Sequence record: PP856017.1
Direction: 5' to 3' (one strand)
DNA: 64,000 bases
In this document: positions 22,524 to 60,208 of the stretch, piece by piece
Layout of the letters: every line of letters starts with the position of its first letter
How positions within the stretch are numbered: the stretch's first letter is position 1
Notes under the pieces: generated by a model
Databases searched by the model: none
Told to the model about the DNA's origin: nothing
Seen by the model: only the letters and a program-made list of their open reading frames with translations
Position numbers and translations under genes: made by a program

Positions 22524-22568
22524 GCATAGGTCCCTACTCCTGCCTTTCGGCAGGAGTAGGTCTATGTC
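22524..22568. terminator. bidirectional hairpin with GCATAG / CTATGTC flanks
   Basis: cctactcctgcc-tttc-ggcaggagtagg (22533-22560) between convergent genes. Confidence 0.8.
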
Positions 22569-22571
22569 CAT

Positions 22572-23261
22572 CTACGAAGGAACTAATTCAAGACAAGGCC
22601 GCCACACATACACGTTCGATTGGGCATTGTAACTAACATTGCCGCTACCTGTGATATTAGTCCCACCCCGAAAAGCAACAGCATTAGTTCCAGGAGAACT
22701 GTAAGTATTGGCGCAAAAACTGTTTGATTGAGAACTAAAACCAAGATCGCTTGGCAAGTAAGGATTATCGATCTTTGGTCCAGTATAGGTCGTAATGGCG
22801 GGTTCGGAAACGATCGGATAAAACAAATCATTCCACTCGCAACCTGTCAAAACCGCCGGATCGTTGCCTGAATAAACTGGCGTCGGATTATCGCCAGTAG
22901 AAATGAGGCGGATAATGAAAGTCTGACCACCAATTACAATCTTAGCGGTCTGATTTATCCATCCAGCAGACGTCGGGGACGATACCTGAGTAGTGCCGGA
23001 ACCAAAAACGGCACCCCGATTAAATATGCTTTGCCAATTCAGATTTTGACGATAAGGAAGTTTTGCAACATATAGTTCTTTTTCCTTATACATGAAATGC
23101 AACCACGGACTCGTCGTATTTATTGCCGTGCCTGTCGATAATCCAATGCTAGATGATAGTTGAGTGCCACTTACCAGACTGGAAGTAGGAACTTCCCCAA
23201 GAAAAGTCGATGAAAAATCACCCTGTGGTTTCTTTTGTCCTAATAAGAAAGATTCTAACAT
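22572..23261 (-). CDS. virion structural / tail-fibre-associated paralog family protein
   Basis: FLGEVPTSSLVSG..LSSSIG..GTAIN...WLHF...ELYVAK..RQNLNWQSI..RGAVFG pattern typical of multicopy phiKZ-like virion proteins; AT-rich. Confidence 0.65.
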   Translation of the reverse strand: MLESFLLGQKKPQGDFSSTFLGEVPTSSLVSGTQLSSSIGLSTGTAINTTSPWLHFMYKEKELYVAKLPYRQNLNWQSIFNRGAVFGSGTTQVSSPTSAGWINQTAKIVIGGQTFIIRLISTGDNPTPVYSGNDPAVLTGCEWNDLFYPIVSEPAITTYTGPKIDNPYLPSDLGFSSQSNSFCANTYSSPGTNAVAFRGGTNITGSGNVSYNAQSNVYVWRPCLELVPS

Positions 23262-23289
23262 TCTTTTCCCTAGTAATTCTCACTATACA

Positions 23290-34094: not shown

Positions 34095-34146
34095 TTTAAA
34101 AACCCCGTCGTTATTTCAAATGCGGTTTCGGTCGAAAACCAAATTA

Positions 34147-34341
34147 TCAGGGTTTCTCTAAGTTGTATAAGTCTTTCAATTCATCATGAAAAACCCTCAG
34201 CTGAATCATCCAGGATTTTTCAATGTCATTGAATTCGAACTGACAATTGAAAGCATGACCGCTTTGATCAACAACTTGACAGAGAATGCTCTTTTCTTGA
34301 GGCATTTTCTTCAGGATCTCAATTAGCTCTGGTGGTCTCAT
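34147..34341 (-). CDS. small hypothetical protein (64 aa)
   Basis: GAGGT RBS; fills the gap upstream of ACP. Confidence 0.6.
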   Translation of the reverse strand: MRPPELIEILKKMPQEKSILCQVVDQSGHAFNCQFEFNDIEKSWMIQLRVFHDELKDLYNLEKP

Positions 34342-34357
34342 TTAAACCTCAAAAAAA

Positions 34358-34408
34358 TAAGTAGACAGCAAAAAGGGCGGGACAGAGAGGCCGAAGCCTC
34401 CCCATCCC
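34358..34408 (-). terminator. cUUCGg intrinsic terminator closing the large RNA candidate
   Basis: GGGAUGGGGAGGC-UUCG-GCCUCUCUGUCCC followed by U tracts. Confidence 0.75.
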
Positions 34409-34429
34409 AAGCCTAAGATGAAACTGAAC

Positions 34430-34800
34430 TTACACCCCAAAGTCGTCGCATCACCACAAGGAAATGACGAGTGACGACGATGGGCTATAAGCTACTCAGC
34501 GAGTGTCTCCCGACATTTCGCATAGCTTACAACTGGTCCCGAAAAGACCCCTACAATCGATGCGGGCTTAACACACACGAAGGCCCGAGTGCTCGTAACG
34601 CAGCCGCGAACGCGCGCGGCTGCGAGTCGGCAAGGCACCCTATTCCATATCGAGGCGGCAACAAAGGCGGCCTAATGGTAAAGGTCGTGCGGGTAGAGGA
34701 CTCGATTTCGAGACCGATCCTCAGCCGCAATACGACGTGTGTGTTTCGCGGGCCTTTCACCCGAGTGAAGAGCTAGGGCGCGTACGCCGACTCTAACACC
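34430..34800 (-). ncRNA. candidate large structured ncRNA (about 370 nt, multi-branch with pseudoknot)
   Basis: More than eight nested helices, G.U pairs and GNRA/UUCG-type loops on the minus strand; no credible ORF; see findings. Confidence 0.7.
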
Positions 34801-34880
34801 TCTGCCTCGAACAGATCTTCAGAAGCCATCTTGTTAAAGAACGTATCTGCTAGATAGTTAGTCTAGAAGATTGCGCGCAA

Positions 34881-36188: not shown

Positions 36189-36566
36189 TCACATCTTCCT
36201 CAACCACACGTCGATGTGGATGTGACTCATGACGATAAGGAATGCGTAAAGCACCTTACACGCCACATGAAGGAGTTGGTCTCCCATCGCGCTGATACGC
36301 TGTTGTACTCGCACGCAATCGATAACCCAATGAAGCAAGAGTTCTGCGATCGCGATCTGTAATGCCAGAGCCGGATCAAACAGCCACACGATGCCGTATG
36401 TTGCAGCCGCTTGAATCCAGCAGTGCGCAGTCAATCCGAACCACCACGGAAAGACCGGCACCTGTTTGTTCTTGATGTCCGACAAGAACTGGCCTTGACC
36501 TGGAAAGTCAAAGAACCAATGAACGGCGAGCAAACCGCTTAGCACCGTAATAAACGACGTGAACAT
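36189..36566 (-). CDS. DUF3307 family membrane protein
   Basis: HWFFDFPGQ, AHCW, HWVID, DQLLH; GGAG RBS before ATG 36566. Confidence 0.8.
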   Translation of the reverse strand: MFTSFITVLSGLLAVHWFFDFPGQGQFLSDIKNKQVPVFPWWFGLTAHCWIQAAATYGIVWLFDPALALQIAIAELLLHWVIDCVRVQQRISAMGDQLLHVACKVLYAFLIVMSHIHIDVWLRKM

Positions 36567-36590
36567 GTTTGCTCCGAAGAAAGGATGGCC

Positions 36591-36674
36591 CAAGATCTAT
36601 ATCGCCGGGGGAGCGCTTTGTTGGAGCTCGACGCCTGAAGAGGAGGTTGGGGCGTGCGCTCAAACTCGATCTTG
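36591..36674 (-). other. structured element with C-rich loop (ACCUCCU)
   Basis: Nested stems CAAGAUC/GAUCUUG, GAGCGC/GCGCUC, ACGCC/GGCGU. Confidence 0.45.
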
Positions 36675-36678
36675 AACC

Positions 36679-36715
36679 AAAAAAATAGAAGGTGAACTGT
36701 GAAAGCTTCACCCCC
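36679..36715 (-). terminator. intrinsic terminator of the small RNA candidate
   Basis: GGGGGUGAAGCU...AGUUCACCUUC-UAUUUUUUU. Confidence 0.75.
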
Positions 36716-36838
36716 TTATGAAAGGAGCCCAGAACGCATGCCTATATTTCAAGGCGCATCCTGATTGGGTCTGTGTCATCGCCTGCGTGCGCGCTCGCCG
36801 CGTGGCTATGAAATCAAGACGATCGTTCTGGGCAAATC
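36680..36838 (-). ncRNA. candidate small structured ncRNA (about 160 nt) with T-loop-like hairpin
   Basis: 10-bp closing stem 36727-36736/36824-36833, internal helices, TATG just upstream, own terminator. Confidence 0.6.
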
Positions 36839-36867
36839 ATAGCGGATGTAATTATTTTTTTATATCC

Positions 36868-37377
36868 TTAGAGTTCGACGAAGTCGACCTTGGGACCATG
36901 TCGCAGCGATCCGGCCCATTCGCTGCTTTGACTCAATTTCCCATGAATTGTTGAACGAATGATCGATTCGCGATCTGAGGCACGGTAGAATAACCGCGGG
37001 ATCCACAGATCGCATTCGACCGCAATGTTGTCGACCGACACCAGCACTTTGGCGGGAAGCATGTGATCGCGACGACCCATGTTATCGTGATCGTTCAGCG
37101 CTTCCGCAAGCCTCAGGAAGGTGTTACGCTGACTGGTCAGGAAATCATAAGCCGGATCAAAAGGCCCGCAGTCTTGTGACAGCTGGTCGTTTTCATTAAC
37201 GAGTTTGATGCACTCGTCGTAGGAAATGGGGCCGATATTCCTCTTGTAAATCGAGAGCGTCATTTCGGCGCGACGCTTAAGTCTTTCGATGCCTGGGCCC
37301 CGATCCTCCATCAGGTCCTTCAGGTTTTGTTCGCGACGAGCGCGAATCTGTTCTTCTAGTTCCGGTCGGGAAAGCAT
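36868..37377 (-). CDS. hypothetical protein (169 aa)
   Basis: Part of a tightly packed minus-strand run. Confidence 0.65.
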   Translation of the reverse strand: MLSRPELEEQIRARREQNLKDLMEDRGPGIERLKRRAEMTLSIYKRNIGPISYDECIKLVNENDQLSQDCGPFDPAYDFLTSQRNTFLRLAEALNDHDNMGRRDHMLPAKVLVSVDNIAVECDLWIPRLFYRASDRESIIRSTIHGKLSQSSEWAGSLRHGPKVDFVEL

Positions 37378-57914: not shown

Positions 57915-58577
57915 TTACATGTTCTCGTTCAACACCGAAGTCGGATCTTTCTTCTTCGCTGCGTAATGTGCTTCGAGCACATCCCAGGTTGTGAAGATGT
58001 CGCCTTGCTCGATCACATCCAGAGGACGTTCGTCGTCCACCGGAACATTCAGATCGTGATAGGCAACCCATGCGTTGTCGTCTTTACCAAAACGATCGAA
58101 GTTATTCTTGATGCCATGACGATCTTCCGTCCAGATGACACTGTCGATAACGCGCATGAAGTCCGGATCATCGAACCCACGACGACCAGGGTTGGGATTG
58201 CGATAGCTGTCCGAATAACCATCGATGCACTGGATTTCTTCCAGAATGCGTGACATGATGTTGGCCATCAAGTAACGCTGCATCGTCGGCTTGGCGCGCT
58301 GGATTTCCTCGATCGACCGAAGCGGTCGAATGATATCCTTACGCATCGGATCGCCAGAATCGCGAACACGGGCACGGATGCGCCGAAGCGCACGTTCACC
58401 GTTGAATCGTTCGAACACTTCGCGCGAATCCTCAAAGAACCCATTGAAGAGTTCTGTGATTCTCGGCGCATAACGCTCAACCCGTTCTCTCAGATAACCG
58501 AGAGTTCCCTGATGGGGTTCTCCAAACAATTCGGCGTCGATATCTGCTTCGCTGATATAACCGCCTCTGATTCCCAT
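57915..58577 (-). CDS. conserved core protein (220 aa)
   Basis: Coupled (TAATG) to the nvRNAP beta-prime gene. Confidence 0.7.
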   Translation of the reverse strand: MGIRGGYISEADIDAELFGEPHQGTLGYLRERVERYAPRITELFNGFFEDSREVFERFNGERALRRIRARVRDSGDPMRKDIIRPLRSIEEIQRAKPTMQRYLMANIMSRILEEIQCIDGYSDSYRNPNPGRRGFDDPDFMRVIDSVIWTEDRHGIKNNFDRFGKDDNAWVAYHDLNVPVDDERPLDVIEQGDIFTTWDVLEAHYAAKKKDPTSVLNENM

Positions 58578-60208
58578 TAGTGTAACGTCCTTATGTTAAA
58601 CATTTTGTGCATCCGGTCCAGTCTGACTGGATCGGGACGGCGCGCTTCTGCGGTGTAGTTGTACAGGTGATTCACCACCGACGAGACGATCGGTTTAGGC
58701 AACGGCATGTTGTCGCCGATCTTGCGCGGGCCGGACAATTTCCACGCACCGAAGTGCGGAGCCAGATAACGGAGTTCGTCCGTCGTCCAGTTGTCCATAG
58801 TCAGGAAGCCGAACATCTGATCGCCATCGAAGTCCGCGTTCGGGCCAGCAACCGAGATAATCGGATAGCTGATCGACATGATCTTCGGATTGGTCTTGAT
58901 CTTCGTAATGAACATCCGCTGAATCGAAGTACGATACATGGATGGATTACGACCGAAGATGCAGGGAATGCCACGCTTCGGAGGATACTTACGGGCGTCA
59001 TATGCGCCTTCGCCCAGATCTTTACCAACCAGCTTGCCGTCCTGGATCGATGCTTCGATCGTCGGCGACAATTCATACGGCGATTCATCCAGAAGCTCGT
59101 CGAAGAGTTCTTCAAGCAACGGATGATGGACATGCGTGTGCGCATTCAGGAAGTACGCGGCGTCGTTGTGACCGAAGCCACGGCGATACAGTTTACCCAT
59201 CAGGTGCAGACGGAACGTCGTGACGGCCAATGCCCACGGCAGATGAATCTCATCGTGATGATGCGGTTCCGTGAGCGAGTTAATCACTGCGCGGAAACTG
59301 AACCAGCACCGAGTTGCATAAACGTGTTTTCGTACCAGACCAGGTTTGCCGGCGATGAAGTTCTTTTCGTAGTCACGCCCGAACTCGGACAATGCCTCGG
59401 AAAGCTTGGACGCACGATTTTCCTTTTGGGAGATCGAGAAGTCCTTGATCTCGCTGTCGATGCCGGAGATGTTCCGGACCGCATCGATGATCGTTTTCAG
59501 CGTCGTATCCATGTAAGTACCGAACTTGGTGTTTTCAATCACCAGGATGGTCTTGTTGTGAATCGGTACGTGCTGCGAGAAGATGCGATCGCGATACATT
59601 GCGATGAAGATCTGCATCTCCTTGAGTTTCTCTTTCTTGTCCCTCGTCGAACTGAATTGTGGAAACTCACAAAGCTGACCGATAATCCAGTCAAAGTTGT
59701 GATAGAAGAAGTTCAGGCCGCGCACGATCTTGCGATTTTCGAGCTCGTCCATCCAACGACCATGATGCTGGCGATTCGGACGATAATCCGTATTCGTCAG
59801 ATACTTGATGATGTTGAACTTCTGGTTGCTGTTGTTCGAGAGACTGAAGAAGTCCGAGAGCAGCCGCCATGCCTGAGGGTTAATCAGTGCATCGACGCCT
59901 CTCGGCGCTTCAACCCAGATGATGGGCTCAAGCGGTTTATCCAGCATCGGCTGGACCATCGTTTTACATTTCCGACAGATGGTCCCCTTACCTTTTCTGT
60001 CGATGTGATGCTGCCCGATGGTGTGTCCGCATGAACACTTCGGAATAGTGTCCAGCAGATCGGTATCGTTATACGTCACGAAGAAGTTCTCATCGAACGC
60101 CGACTTCTCCGTTTCCAGCGTATCGAGAACCTTGTTGACGATGATCGGGTCTGATGTTATCTGCGAGAATAACTCGTCATAGTTCTGCATTTCCAAATGT
60201 GTGCCCAT
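58577..60208 (-). CDS. non-virion RNA polymerase beta-prime N-terminal catalytic subunit (gp55-like), uninterrupted
   Basis: CSCG...CRKC zinc finger, GRNPS, catalytic NADFDGD. Confidence 0.93.
   Translation of the reverse strand: MGTHLEMQNYDELFSQITSDPIIVNKVLDTLETEKSAFDENFFVTYNDTDLLDTIPKCSCGHTIGQHHIDRKGKGTICRKCKTMVQPMLDKPLEPIIWVEAPRGVDALINPQAWRLLSDFFSLSNNSNQKFNIIKYLTNTDYRPNRQHHGRWMDELENRKIVRGLNFFYHNFDWIIGQLCEFPQFSSTRDKKEKLKEMQIFIAMYRDRIFSQHVPIHNKTILVIENTKFGTYMDTTLKTIIDAVRNISGIDSEIKDFSISQKENRASKLSEALSEFGRDYEKNFIAGKPGLVRKHVYATRCWFSFRAVINSLTEPHHHDEIHLPWALAVTTFRLHLMGKLYRRGFGHNDAAYFLNAHTHVHHPLLEELFDELLDESPYELSPTIEASIQDGKLVGKDLGEGAYDARKYPPKRGIPCIFGRNPSMYRTSIQRMFITKIKTNPKIMSISYPIISVAGPNADFDGDQMFGFLTMDNWTTDELRYLAPHFGAWKLSGPRKIGDNMPLPKPIVSSVVNHLYNYTAEARRPDPVRLDRMHKMFNIRTLH

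Follow-up and report, generated by a model that had tools for sequence, protein, structure and literature searches.

The 301-nt gap between two minus-strand genes of Burkholderia phage vB_BgluM-SURPRISE13 (S13) holds a very stable RNA domain, here called RNA1, which is set between a conserved promoter-like element and an intrinsic terminator in nine related phages. What would such an arrangement be for? The explanation we prefer, with confidence a little short of even, is a genus-specific short non-coding transcription unit that yields a terminated leader or sRNA of ~160 nt, of the kind found in phages phiKZ and 201phi2-1, with read-through supplying a second RNA domain (domain 2) and the gene behind it, which encodes a DUF3307 protein. 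Transcription would start from a bipartite promoter-like element (an A-tract and TAT(G/C)AT) at or just after G36838, and a long-range helix, P1, would close the very stable domain formed by the first ~110 nt. After a pyrimidine-rich linker, a Rho-independent terminator would stop most polymerases near position 36680 and release an RNA of ~155–165 nt; the same terminator would end the transcripts of the upstream 213–211 operon. Domain 2 and the DUF3307 gene would probably be expressed by read-through of this terminator, because no promoter is recognisable between the terminator and the next gene. Taken together, RNA1 and its terminator would gate transcription by termination close to the promoter, with a short and abundant leader RNA as the product, as mapped for P112-T102 and TU237 of phiKZ. 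An earlier note on this DNA had proposed a stand-alone structured RNA with a T-loop, possibly a riboswitch; the stable fold between promoter-like element and terminator survives comparison across the nine phages, and the T-loop and riboswitch parts of the proposal do not.

The analysed window, a stretch of 64,000 nt, is 100% identical to S13 (PP856017.1), a 227.6-kb phiKZ-like jumbo phage related to the Chiangmaivirus phages RSL2 and RSF1; window position x corresponds to position x + 163647 of the record. The gap (36567–36867) lies between the upstream gene SURPRISE13_211 (36868–37377, minus strand), which encodes a genus-specific hypothetical protein, and the downstream gene SURPRISE13_210 (36189–36566, minus strand), which encodes the DUF3307/phrog_2470 membrane protein. 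These two genes and all others for ~30 kb around are on the minus strand. A synteny-based homologue search found proteins 211 and 212 to be genus-specific.

The fold of RNA1 and its terminator

Reading along the minus strand, four bases (ATTT) separate TATG (36841–36838) from GCCCAGAACG, the 5′ strand of P1 (36824–36833), which in S13 pairs perfectly with the 3′ strand CGTTCTGGGC (36727–36736). P1 encloses a three-way junction, which ViennaRNA returns as both the MFE and the centroid structure of the 113-nt core. One of the enclosed arms, P2 (36757–36821), consists in the MFE folds of a stem pairing 36821–36812 with 36766–36757, a nested P2a/apical hairpin and a 9-nt bulge on the 3′ side that contains AGACCC. 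Within this stem UCUUGAUU (36819–36812) is paired with AAUCAGGA (36766–36759), and in the nested arm CAUAGCC (36810–36804) pairs with GGCGAUG (36783–36777). The other arm is the P3 hairpin GCCU-UGAAAUAU-AGGC (36740–36755), which is hypervariable among relatives. The TATG, the 10-bp closing stem, the three-way junction, the nested arm and the GCCU/AGGC hairpin had all been described in the earlier note; each is present on the minus strand at the positions given here, in agreement with the MFE and centroid structures.

How stable is this fold? The 113-nt core reaches −48.4 kcal/mol compared with −32.6 ± 3.5 for dinucleotide shuffles (z −4.57), and none of 200 shuffles was as stable; the 176-nt unit gives a z of −3.48. 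Fold energy is similar on the two strands and hence uninformative for strand assignment. Coding explanations for the same stretch were rejected: a plus-strand open reading frame (36718–36954) and a minus-strand one (36508–36711) are broken in relatives by indels that are not multiples of three, and an eight-codon frame starting at the TATG loses its ATG in RSF1.

P1 is followed by a C/U-rich single-stranded linker, UCCUUUCAU (36718–36726, minus strand). The linkers of other variants are of the AACCCCCCUUU type, so that the pyrimidine-rich character is kept and the sequence is not. Next comes the intrinsic terminator (36679–36717, minus strand), a 12-pair hairpin (36717–36687; −11.8 kcal/mol) followed by an A and U7 at 36685–36679, which places the end of the U-run 163 nt from TATG. 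A simple terminator scanner missed it; ViennaRNA folds the hairpin in every context tested. The earlier claim of an intrinsic terminator can be extended beyond S13, as all variants show the features of Rho-independent termination, namely hairpins of 8–12 bp (−11.8 to −15.1 kcal/mol) and then U7–9. Two unrelated hairpin sequences serve this purpose, one in S13 and RSF1 and the other in RsoM3USA, FLC and RSL2. Since the hairpin has been replaced and yet a hairpin with U7–9 is always present, selection appears to act on termination itself.

The promoter-like element and the upstream operon

The conserved module begins exactly at ATAAAAAAATAA, which is identical in nine out of nine phages, and this boundary is the same in RSF1 and RSL2 despite the different gene inserted upstream of it there. 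At this 5′ boundary lies an invariant A-tract block, TATAAAAAAATAA (36852–36864, minus strand), at about −26 to −15 relative to G36838. It is the sole exact copy in the window, and the combination of A-tract and TATG is unique in the S13 genome. Behind it follow a variable spacer of 10–11 nt, the conserved TAT(G/C)AT (TATGAT at 36836–36841, minus strand, in S13), which is a candidate start-site or −10-like element, and 15 invariant bases, among them the entire 5′ strand of P1. Two invariant blocks held apart by a variable spacer of fixed length, with the module boundary falling exactly at the A-tract, make a promoter-like pattern of conservation. It is because of this bipartite conservation and this boundary that a promoter at RNA1 is judged likely from the sequences; the predicted start site is 36838 or a position up to ~10 nt downstream.

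Which kind of promoter would it be? The earlier note had assigned it to the late promoters of phiKZ. The core of these is TATG, with G as +1; every base of it matters, substitutions are crippling in vitro, and beyond the core it is the downstream sequence that most determines strength (PMC4666361). The TATG and the 15 invariant bases that follow would fit these rules (PMC4666361), and four of the five RNA1 variants have TATG; the fifth, RSF1, has TATC, which does not fit. The intergenic DNA of S13 is twofold enriched in TATG, and at 24 of its 54 intergenic TATG sites a hairpin with 7 or more bp ends within the 8 nt upstream, against 11% of control positions. The TATG of RNA1 has no such hairpin and has the A-tract in its place. 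With the core present in most variants, RSF1 deviating and the usual hairpin missing, the late-promoter assignment is not established.

The 24 hairpins at intergenic TATG sites have no U-tract and, with the TATG, may form a cassette in which terminator and late promoter are combined. Other S13 hairpins make up a second class, with long T-runs, and tend to precede ATATAT-type motifs.

Another recurrent motif of S13, of the early-promoter type, has ATTTCAG or an A-tract, N6–9 and then TATAT[AC]A[CT]. A position weight matrix for it was built from eight intergenic sites, and its highest score in the genome scan was 43.3 bits. At RNA1 the best scores were −2.7 to 9.1 bits, with the matches falling on the A-tract and not on TATGAT, and by this measure the site does not match the early type. 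By eye, TTTATCAT of RSF1 agrees with the early-type core at seven of eight positions. A sigma-70 reading is possible but was set aside: TATGAT has five of the six bases of a −10 hexamer, yet it lacks a −35 and a TGn element, and a promoter scanner makes no call. What speaks for this reading is that RSL2 and RSF1 are rifampicin-sensitive (PMC5468394).

Transcripts from upstream have to be considered as well. No other terminator is found on the gene strand between gene 211 and the RNA1 terminator, so transcripts of the 213–211 operon would end at the RNA1 terminator too. On the other side, 113 nt separate the terminator U-tract from gene 210, and a search between the terminator and this gene for TATG or the early-type motif gave nothing recognisable.

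Variation among relatives and competing explanations

Among about 50,700 phage records searched with blastn and tblastn, the locus is found in nine phages only (S13, RSF1, RSL2, RsoM3USA, FLC6, FLC8, FLC4-4C, FLC4-5C and FLC4-11C), which carry five distinct versions of RNA1 in the same intergenic gap. RNA1, terminator and domain 2 are always inherited together, with insertions only outside this block, and in six phages the three also fold independently of one another within the complete 5′ region. A stable domain closed by P1 is present in five of five variants (z −2.9 to −4.9), each time with a P2 stem and a small apical hairpin, and the length of P1 is 10–13 bp. Three substitutions have occurred in the 3′ strand of P1; two of them lead to G-U pairs (RSL2, FLC) and one to an A·G mismatch (FLC). 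The G-U substitutions keep pairing only on the gene strand. The 5′ strand of P1, which lies within the invariant 15-nt stretch ATTTGCCCAGAACGA, and the five preceding bases are invariant in all variants while the 3′ strand tolerates G-U, which argues for an extra constraint on the first ~20 transcribed bases.

The interior of RNA1 is far less constant. Its core measures 83–107 nt, with an apical arm 16 nt shorter in RsoM3USA, FLC and RSL2. The strand sequences of P2 differ in FLC and RSL2, and RsoM3USA has one compensatory change in P2 from U-A to C-G; AGACCCA is found in four of the five variants and is missing in FLC. The junction is three-way in S13, RSF1 and RsoM3USA, whereas FLC has two hairpins nested in an extended stem and RSL2 a single irregular hairpin. 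RSF1 and RsoM3USA keep the P3 stem, with one compensatory change from U-A to C-G, but its loop is completely different in each phage (UGAAAUAU in S13, GCGGCGAC in RSF1, CUUAAACAA in RsoM3USA). RSL2 lacks the arm, and FLC has a different hairpin elsewhere. Covariation in RNA1 is thin: two changes are double-sided, and 124 of 500 shuffles do as well. The support for an RNA structure comes from the stability retained through large sequence change and from the G-U pattern, and not from compensatory-pair statistics. Of the structural conservation that the earlier note had looked to, the stable P1-closed fold holds in every variant, and a constant topology does not.

Comparison of S13 with RSF1 shows nearly identical RNA1 and terminator sequences between flanking proteins that are only 66–77% identical; from the P3 loop through its 3′ side (window 36740–36755), 10 of 13 bases are replaced. 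RsoM3USA has an S13-like P2 and P3 joined to an apical hairpin and terminator like those of FLC and RSL2. The unit looks mosaic, with one hypervariable loop. Judged from these natural variants, P3 and the apical arm are dispensable, and the first 20 nt, P1, the terminator and domain 2 are fixed.

Is a promoter needed to explain this pattern? RNA1 might have none of its own and be the 3′ untranslated end of the upstream operon, either protecting the 213–211 mRNA from 3′ exonucleases or serving as a processing site in the manner of the RNase III hairpins of phage T7; this is the main rival, and we regard it as rather unlikely. Upstream transcripts must enter RNA1 in any case, as there is no terminator after gene 211, and an extended, irregular hairpin whose lower stem is conserved while the upper part is free suits a nuclease substrate or a protective structure. 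Moreover, the A-tract (36852–36864) is complementary to the U-tract (36679–36685), and for a transcript that starts upstream the MFE structure pairs the two in RSF1, RsoM3USA and RSL2, three of the five variants, which would account for the conservation of the A-tract without a promoter. However, this helix is marginal, and the predictions for S13 and FLC6 lack it. Two further observations sit badly with a 3′ untranslated end: the invariance of TAT(G/C)ATTT and of the P1 5′ strand is left unexplained, given that the 3′ strand varies, and the unit of RSF1 and RSL2 follows other, inserted genes and yet starts at exactly the same base. A stand-alone trans-acting sRNA, in which the structured 5′ domain would give stability, the linker or another unpaired segment would pair with purine-rich ribosome-binding sites and the terminator with its U-tail would be an Hfq-type 3′ module, shares the conserved promoter-like element and terminator with the preferred explanation. 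The 5′ structure, the single-stranded C/U-rich stretch and the terminator with its long U-tail are indeed present in all variants. Against this, none of the unpaired segments has a conserved sequence in all five variants (of the linker only the composition is kept, and AGACCCA is missing in FLC), and the matches to RNA1 segments found in a search of the S13 genome for trans targets lie in coding regions, in both orientations, and look compositional. We consider such an sRNA unlikely.

A ligand- or protein-sensing aptamer that controls the terminator would correspond to the riboswitch alternative of the earlier note; in its favour, RNA1 lies on the gene strand with a terminator behind its three-way junction. 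A candidate competing hairpin, CUCCUU/AAGGGG, overlaps the 5′ half of the terminator in S13 and RSF1, but it is absent from the other three variants, so that no antiterminator alternative is conserved across the family. The junction and loop nucleotides are not conserved either, topology and length (83–107 nt) vary, only two pairs are compensatory, and Rfam gives no match even at E ≤ 10. The riboswitch reading of RNA1 appears largely refuted by these comparisons and is extremely improbable; attenuation ahead of the DUF3307 operon, the other alternative of the note, remains a candidate as part of the preferred explanation. The T-loop has fared no better: it amounts to a UGAAA match to a degenerate 5-nt pattern in one loop, and that loop differs or is absent in the relatives. 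Could the fold be a product of chance, or an element acting as DNA (an inverted repeat bound by a protein, or a MITE-like insert bounded by GCCCAGAACG and CGTTCTGGGC) with no role as RNA? The arms of P1 do form a perfect inverted repeat, and the similar fold energies of the two strands and the thin covariation speak for it as well. It is nevertheless very improbable, as the element is a single copy at a fixed position in nine phages, without paralogues or MITE-like copies in the 227-kb genome, its stability survives large interior changes, the G-U pairing in P1 works on the gene strand only, and the terminator is oriented with the genes. Counting against the preferred explanation, a terminated leader with read-through, are the TATC of RSF1, the lack of a hairpin upstream of TATG, the poor early-motif score, the want of a conserved antiterminator alternative (S13 and RSF1 alone have a candidate), the thin covariation and the strand-neutral fold energy.

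Domain 2, known systems and neighbouring gaps

Directly after the U-tract lies domain 2 (36587–36680, minus strand), a 94-nt three-way junction whose helices are an outer stem, the long hairpin A and the short hairpin B. With 86% column identity it is the most conserved part of the gap. In the alignment 96% of cells are paired, compared with 27–37% in slid controls, five pairs are changed on both sides, and the covariation score is reached by none of 500 shuffles. Frame-breaking indels among relatives show domain 2 to be non-coding. FLC4-5C has a CDS annotated across domain 2 and the inserted leader (753–986 of the extracted locus), which is probably spurious because of these frame-shifting indels. 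A covariance model finds domain 2 once in the S13 genome, and it has no match in Rfam.

The loop of hairpin A contains an invariant CCAACCUCC (36652–36636, minus strand) with ACCUCCU, which is identical to the anti-Shine-Dalgarno core at the 3′ end of 16S rRNA. Does this loop have a partner? It is perfectly complementary over 10 nt to AGGAGGTTGG (60218–60209, minus strand), which lies immediately ahead of the start codon of SURPRISE13_233 (58577–60208), a gene for an RNA polymerase beta-like subunit, and is the ribosome-binding site of that gene. Four of the five variants keep this site; RSL2 has one mismatch there, for which its loop does not compensate. With three copies in the genome against about 1.7 expected, the 9-mer GGAGGTTGG shows no enrichment, and by our estimate such a loop would match some ribosome-binding site by chance roughly once in ten cases. 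The match to SURPRISE13_233 may serve as a lead and is not a finding. It could be imagined that RNA1 and its terminator gate a two-part device, in which read-through releases domain 2 and its loop occludes the ribosome-binding site of SURPRISE13_233, giving an RNA-based timing of the phage transcription machinery; we hold this extension to be quite improbable.

Between domain 2 and the DUF3307 gene, five of the phages have an additional gene of 114–115 aa (phrog_8792) with its own leader of ~85 nt, and four do not. It is located at 1885–2229 in the extracted RSF1 locus and at 1881–2228 and 1879–2223 in those of two further relatives, and it shows weak similarity to an integrase phrog. This gap is a hotspot of gene insertion. 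DUF3307 homologues in phiKZ (PHIKZ197) and Xanthomonas phage PhiXhv-12 have no leader at all, which argues that the module is not a general regulator of DUF3307 genes.

How does the locus compare with known systems? Short RNAs of less than 250 nt, whose start site is closely followed by a terminator, have been confirmed by northern blotting in phiKZ and 201phi2-1 (PMC10914365; PMC11512511). In phiKZ, P112-T102 gives ~71 nt before PHIKZ221 and is more than 90% terminated, and TU237 gives a northern-confirmed RNA of 141 nt before PHIKZ302; 201phi2-1 has 11 sRNAs (PMC10914365; PMC11512511). Most of these transcripts stop at the terminator and a minority read through (PMC10914365, PMC11512511). 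The S13 unit shares with them the setting in a nucleus-forming jumbo phage and, as a prediction, the layout of a start and a terminator within 250 nt, on the gene strand and upstream of a gene. It differs in that no sequence or structural homology to them was found and the neighbouring genes are different, and in its second conserved RNA domain behind the terminator, which has not been described for phiKZ.

A more distant parallel is the PR′-tR′ region of phage lambda, where a constitutive promoter produces the terminated '6S' RNA of ~190 nt directly upstream of genes that are expressed only on read-through, under antitermination by Q. The resemblance is one of layout only: the polymerase transcribing RNA1 is probably the multisubunit enzyme of the phage, and we know of no Q-like factor or qut-like site for the S13 unit. 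Like riboswitch and T-box attenuators, RNA1 places a multi-helix junction and then a terminator before a gene; unlike them, it has no conserved aptamer core, no conserved terminator/antiterminator alternative and no Rfam match. RNAs with T-loops (the T-arm of tRNA, RNase P, YrlA) come to mind as the P3 loop of S13 begins with UGAAA and fits the pentamer pattern, but the loop is replaced in every relative, and there is no match to Y RNAs or YrlA, no tRNA-like element and no neighbour of the Ro or RtcB type. As for domain 2, sRNAs with anti-Shine-Dalgarno loops include the 'cuckoo' RNAs of alpha-proteobacteria, whose loop is CCUCCUCCC, and the C-rich RsaE/RoxS. Domain 2 resembles these RNAs in its invariant hairpin loop, which displays ACCUCCU, without being homologous to them, and its location is different, after a terminator inside a phage 5′ region.

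Searches for a known family or for further homologues returned little. The earlier note's proposal of an Rfam comparison produced no credible match: Rfam 15 gave none in the whole window at the gathering threshold, only a spurious opposite-strand snoRNA match at the RNA1 locus at E ≤ 10, and nothing credible for the five homologous loci at E ≤ 1. ARAGORN found no tRNA or tmRNA gene in the window. In IMG/VR the 19-mer TATGATTTGCCCAGAACGA occurs in RSL2 alone, and a degenerate 18-mer had 25 matches in metagenomes (one of them inspected by eye), all without the second arm of P1 or the rest of the module. A 19-mer from domain 2 recovered RSL2 and RSF1 from IMG/VR and GTDB, together with chance matches in coding sequences, none of them confirmed by the covariance model. 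The same model confirmed none of the matches of a gapped domain-2 pattern in IMG/VR, which came mostly from two unrelated and highly redundant coding families. The RNA1 family is absent from Rfam and unmentioned in the S13 genome paper; its kind, the short terminated leader or intergenic RNAs of jumbo phages, is already known.

The non-coding RNAs of nucleus-forming jumbo phages are almost unexplored, with few short terminated transcripts mapped in phiKZ and 201phi2-1 and none of known function. The RNA1 locus is a clean example conserved throughout the genus, from phages under development against pathogens of rice and solanaceous plants, and it suits two questions: whether phage polymerases use promoter-proximal termination as a regulatory gate, and whether the anti-Shine-Dalgarno-like domain 2 acts on translation. 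If it is only a leader with a terminator, it is an ordinary regulatory detail.

Two other gaps in the window deserve mention. Within a 786-nt gap (34095–34880, minus strand) lie a further CTATG (about 34524), some structured sequence and a hairpin with T-runs (34403–34347); this is probably the 'first' small RNA of the earlier note. After this hairpin comes an unannotated 64-codon open reading frame (34341–34147), and a G+C-rich stretch of ~430 nt lies upstream. It has no sequence similarity to RNA1. Between a DNA polymerase gene and a lectin-like gene there is also a stretch of 766 nt (22524–23289) without an annotated gene.
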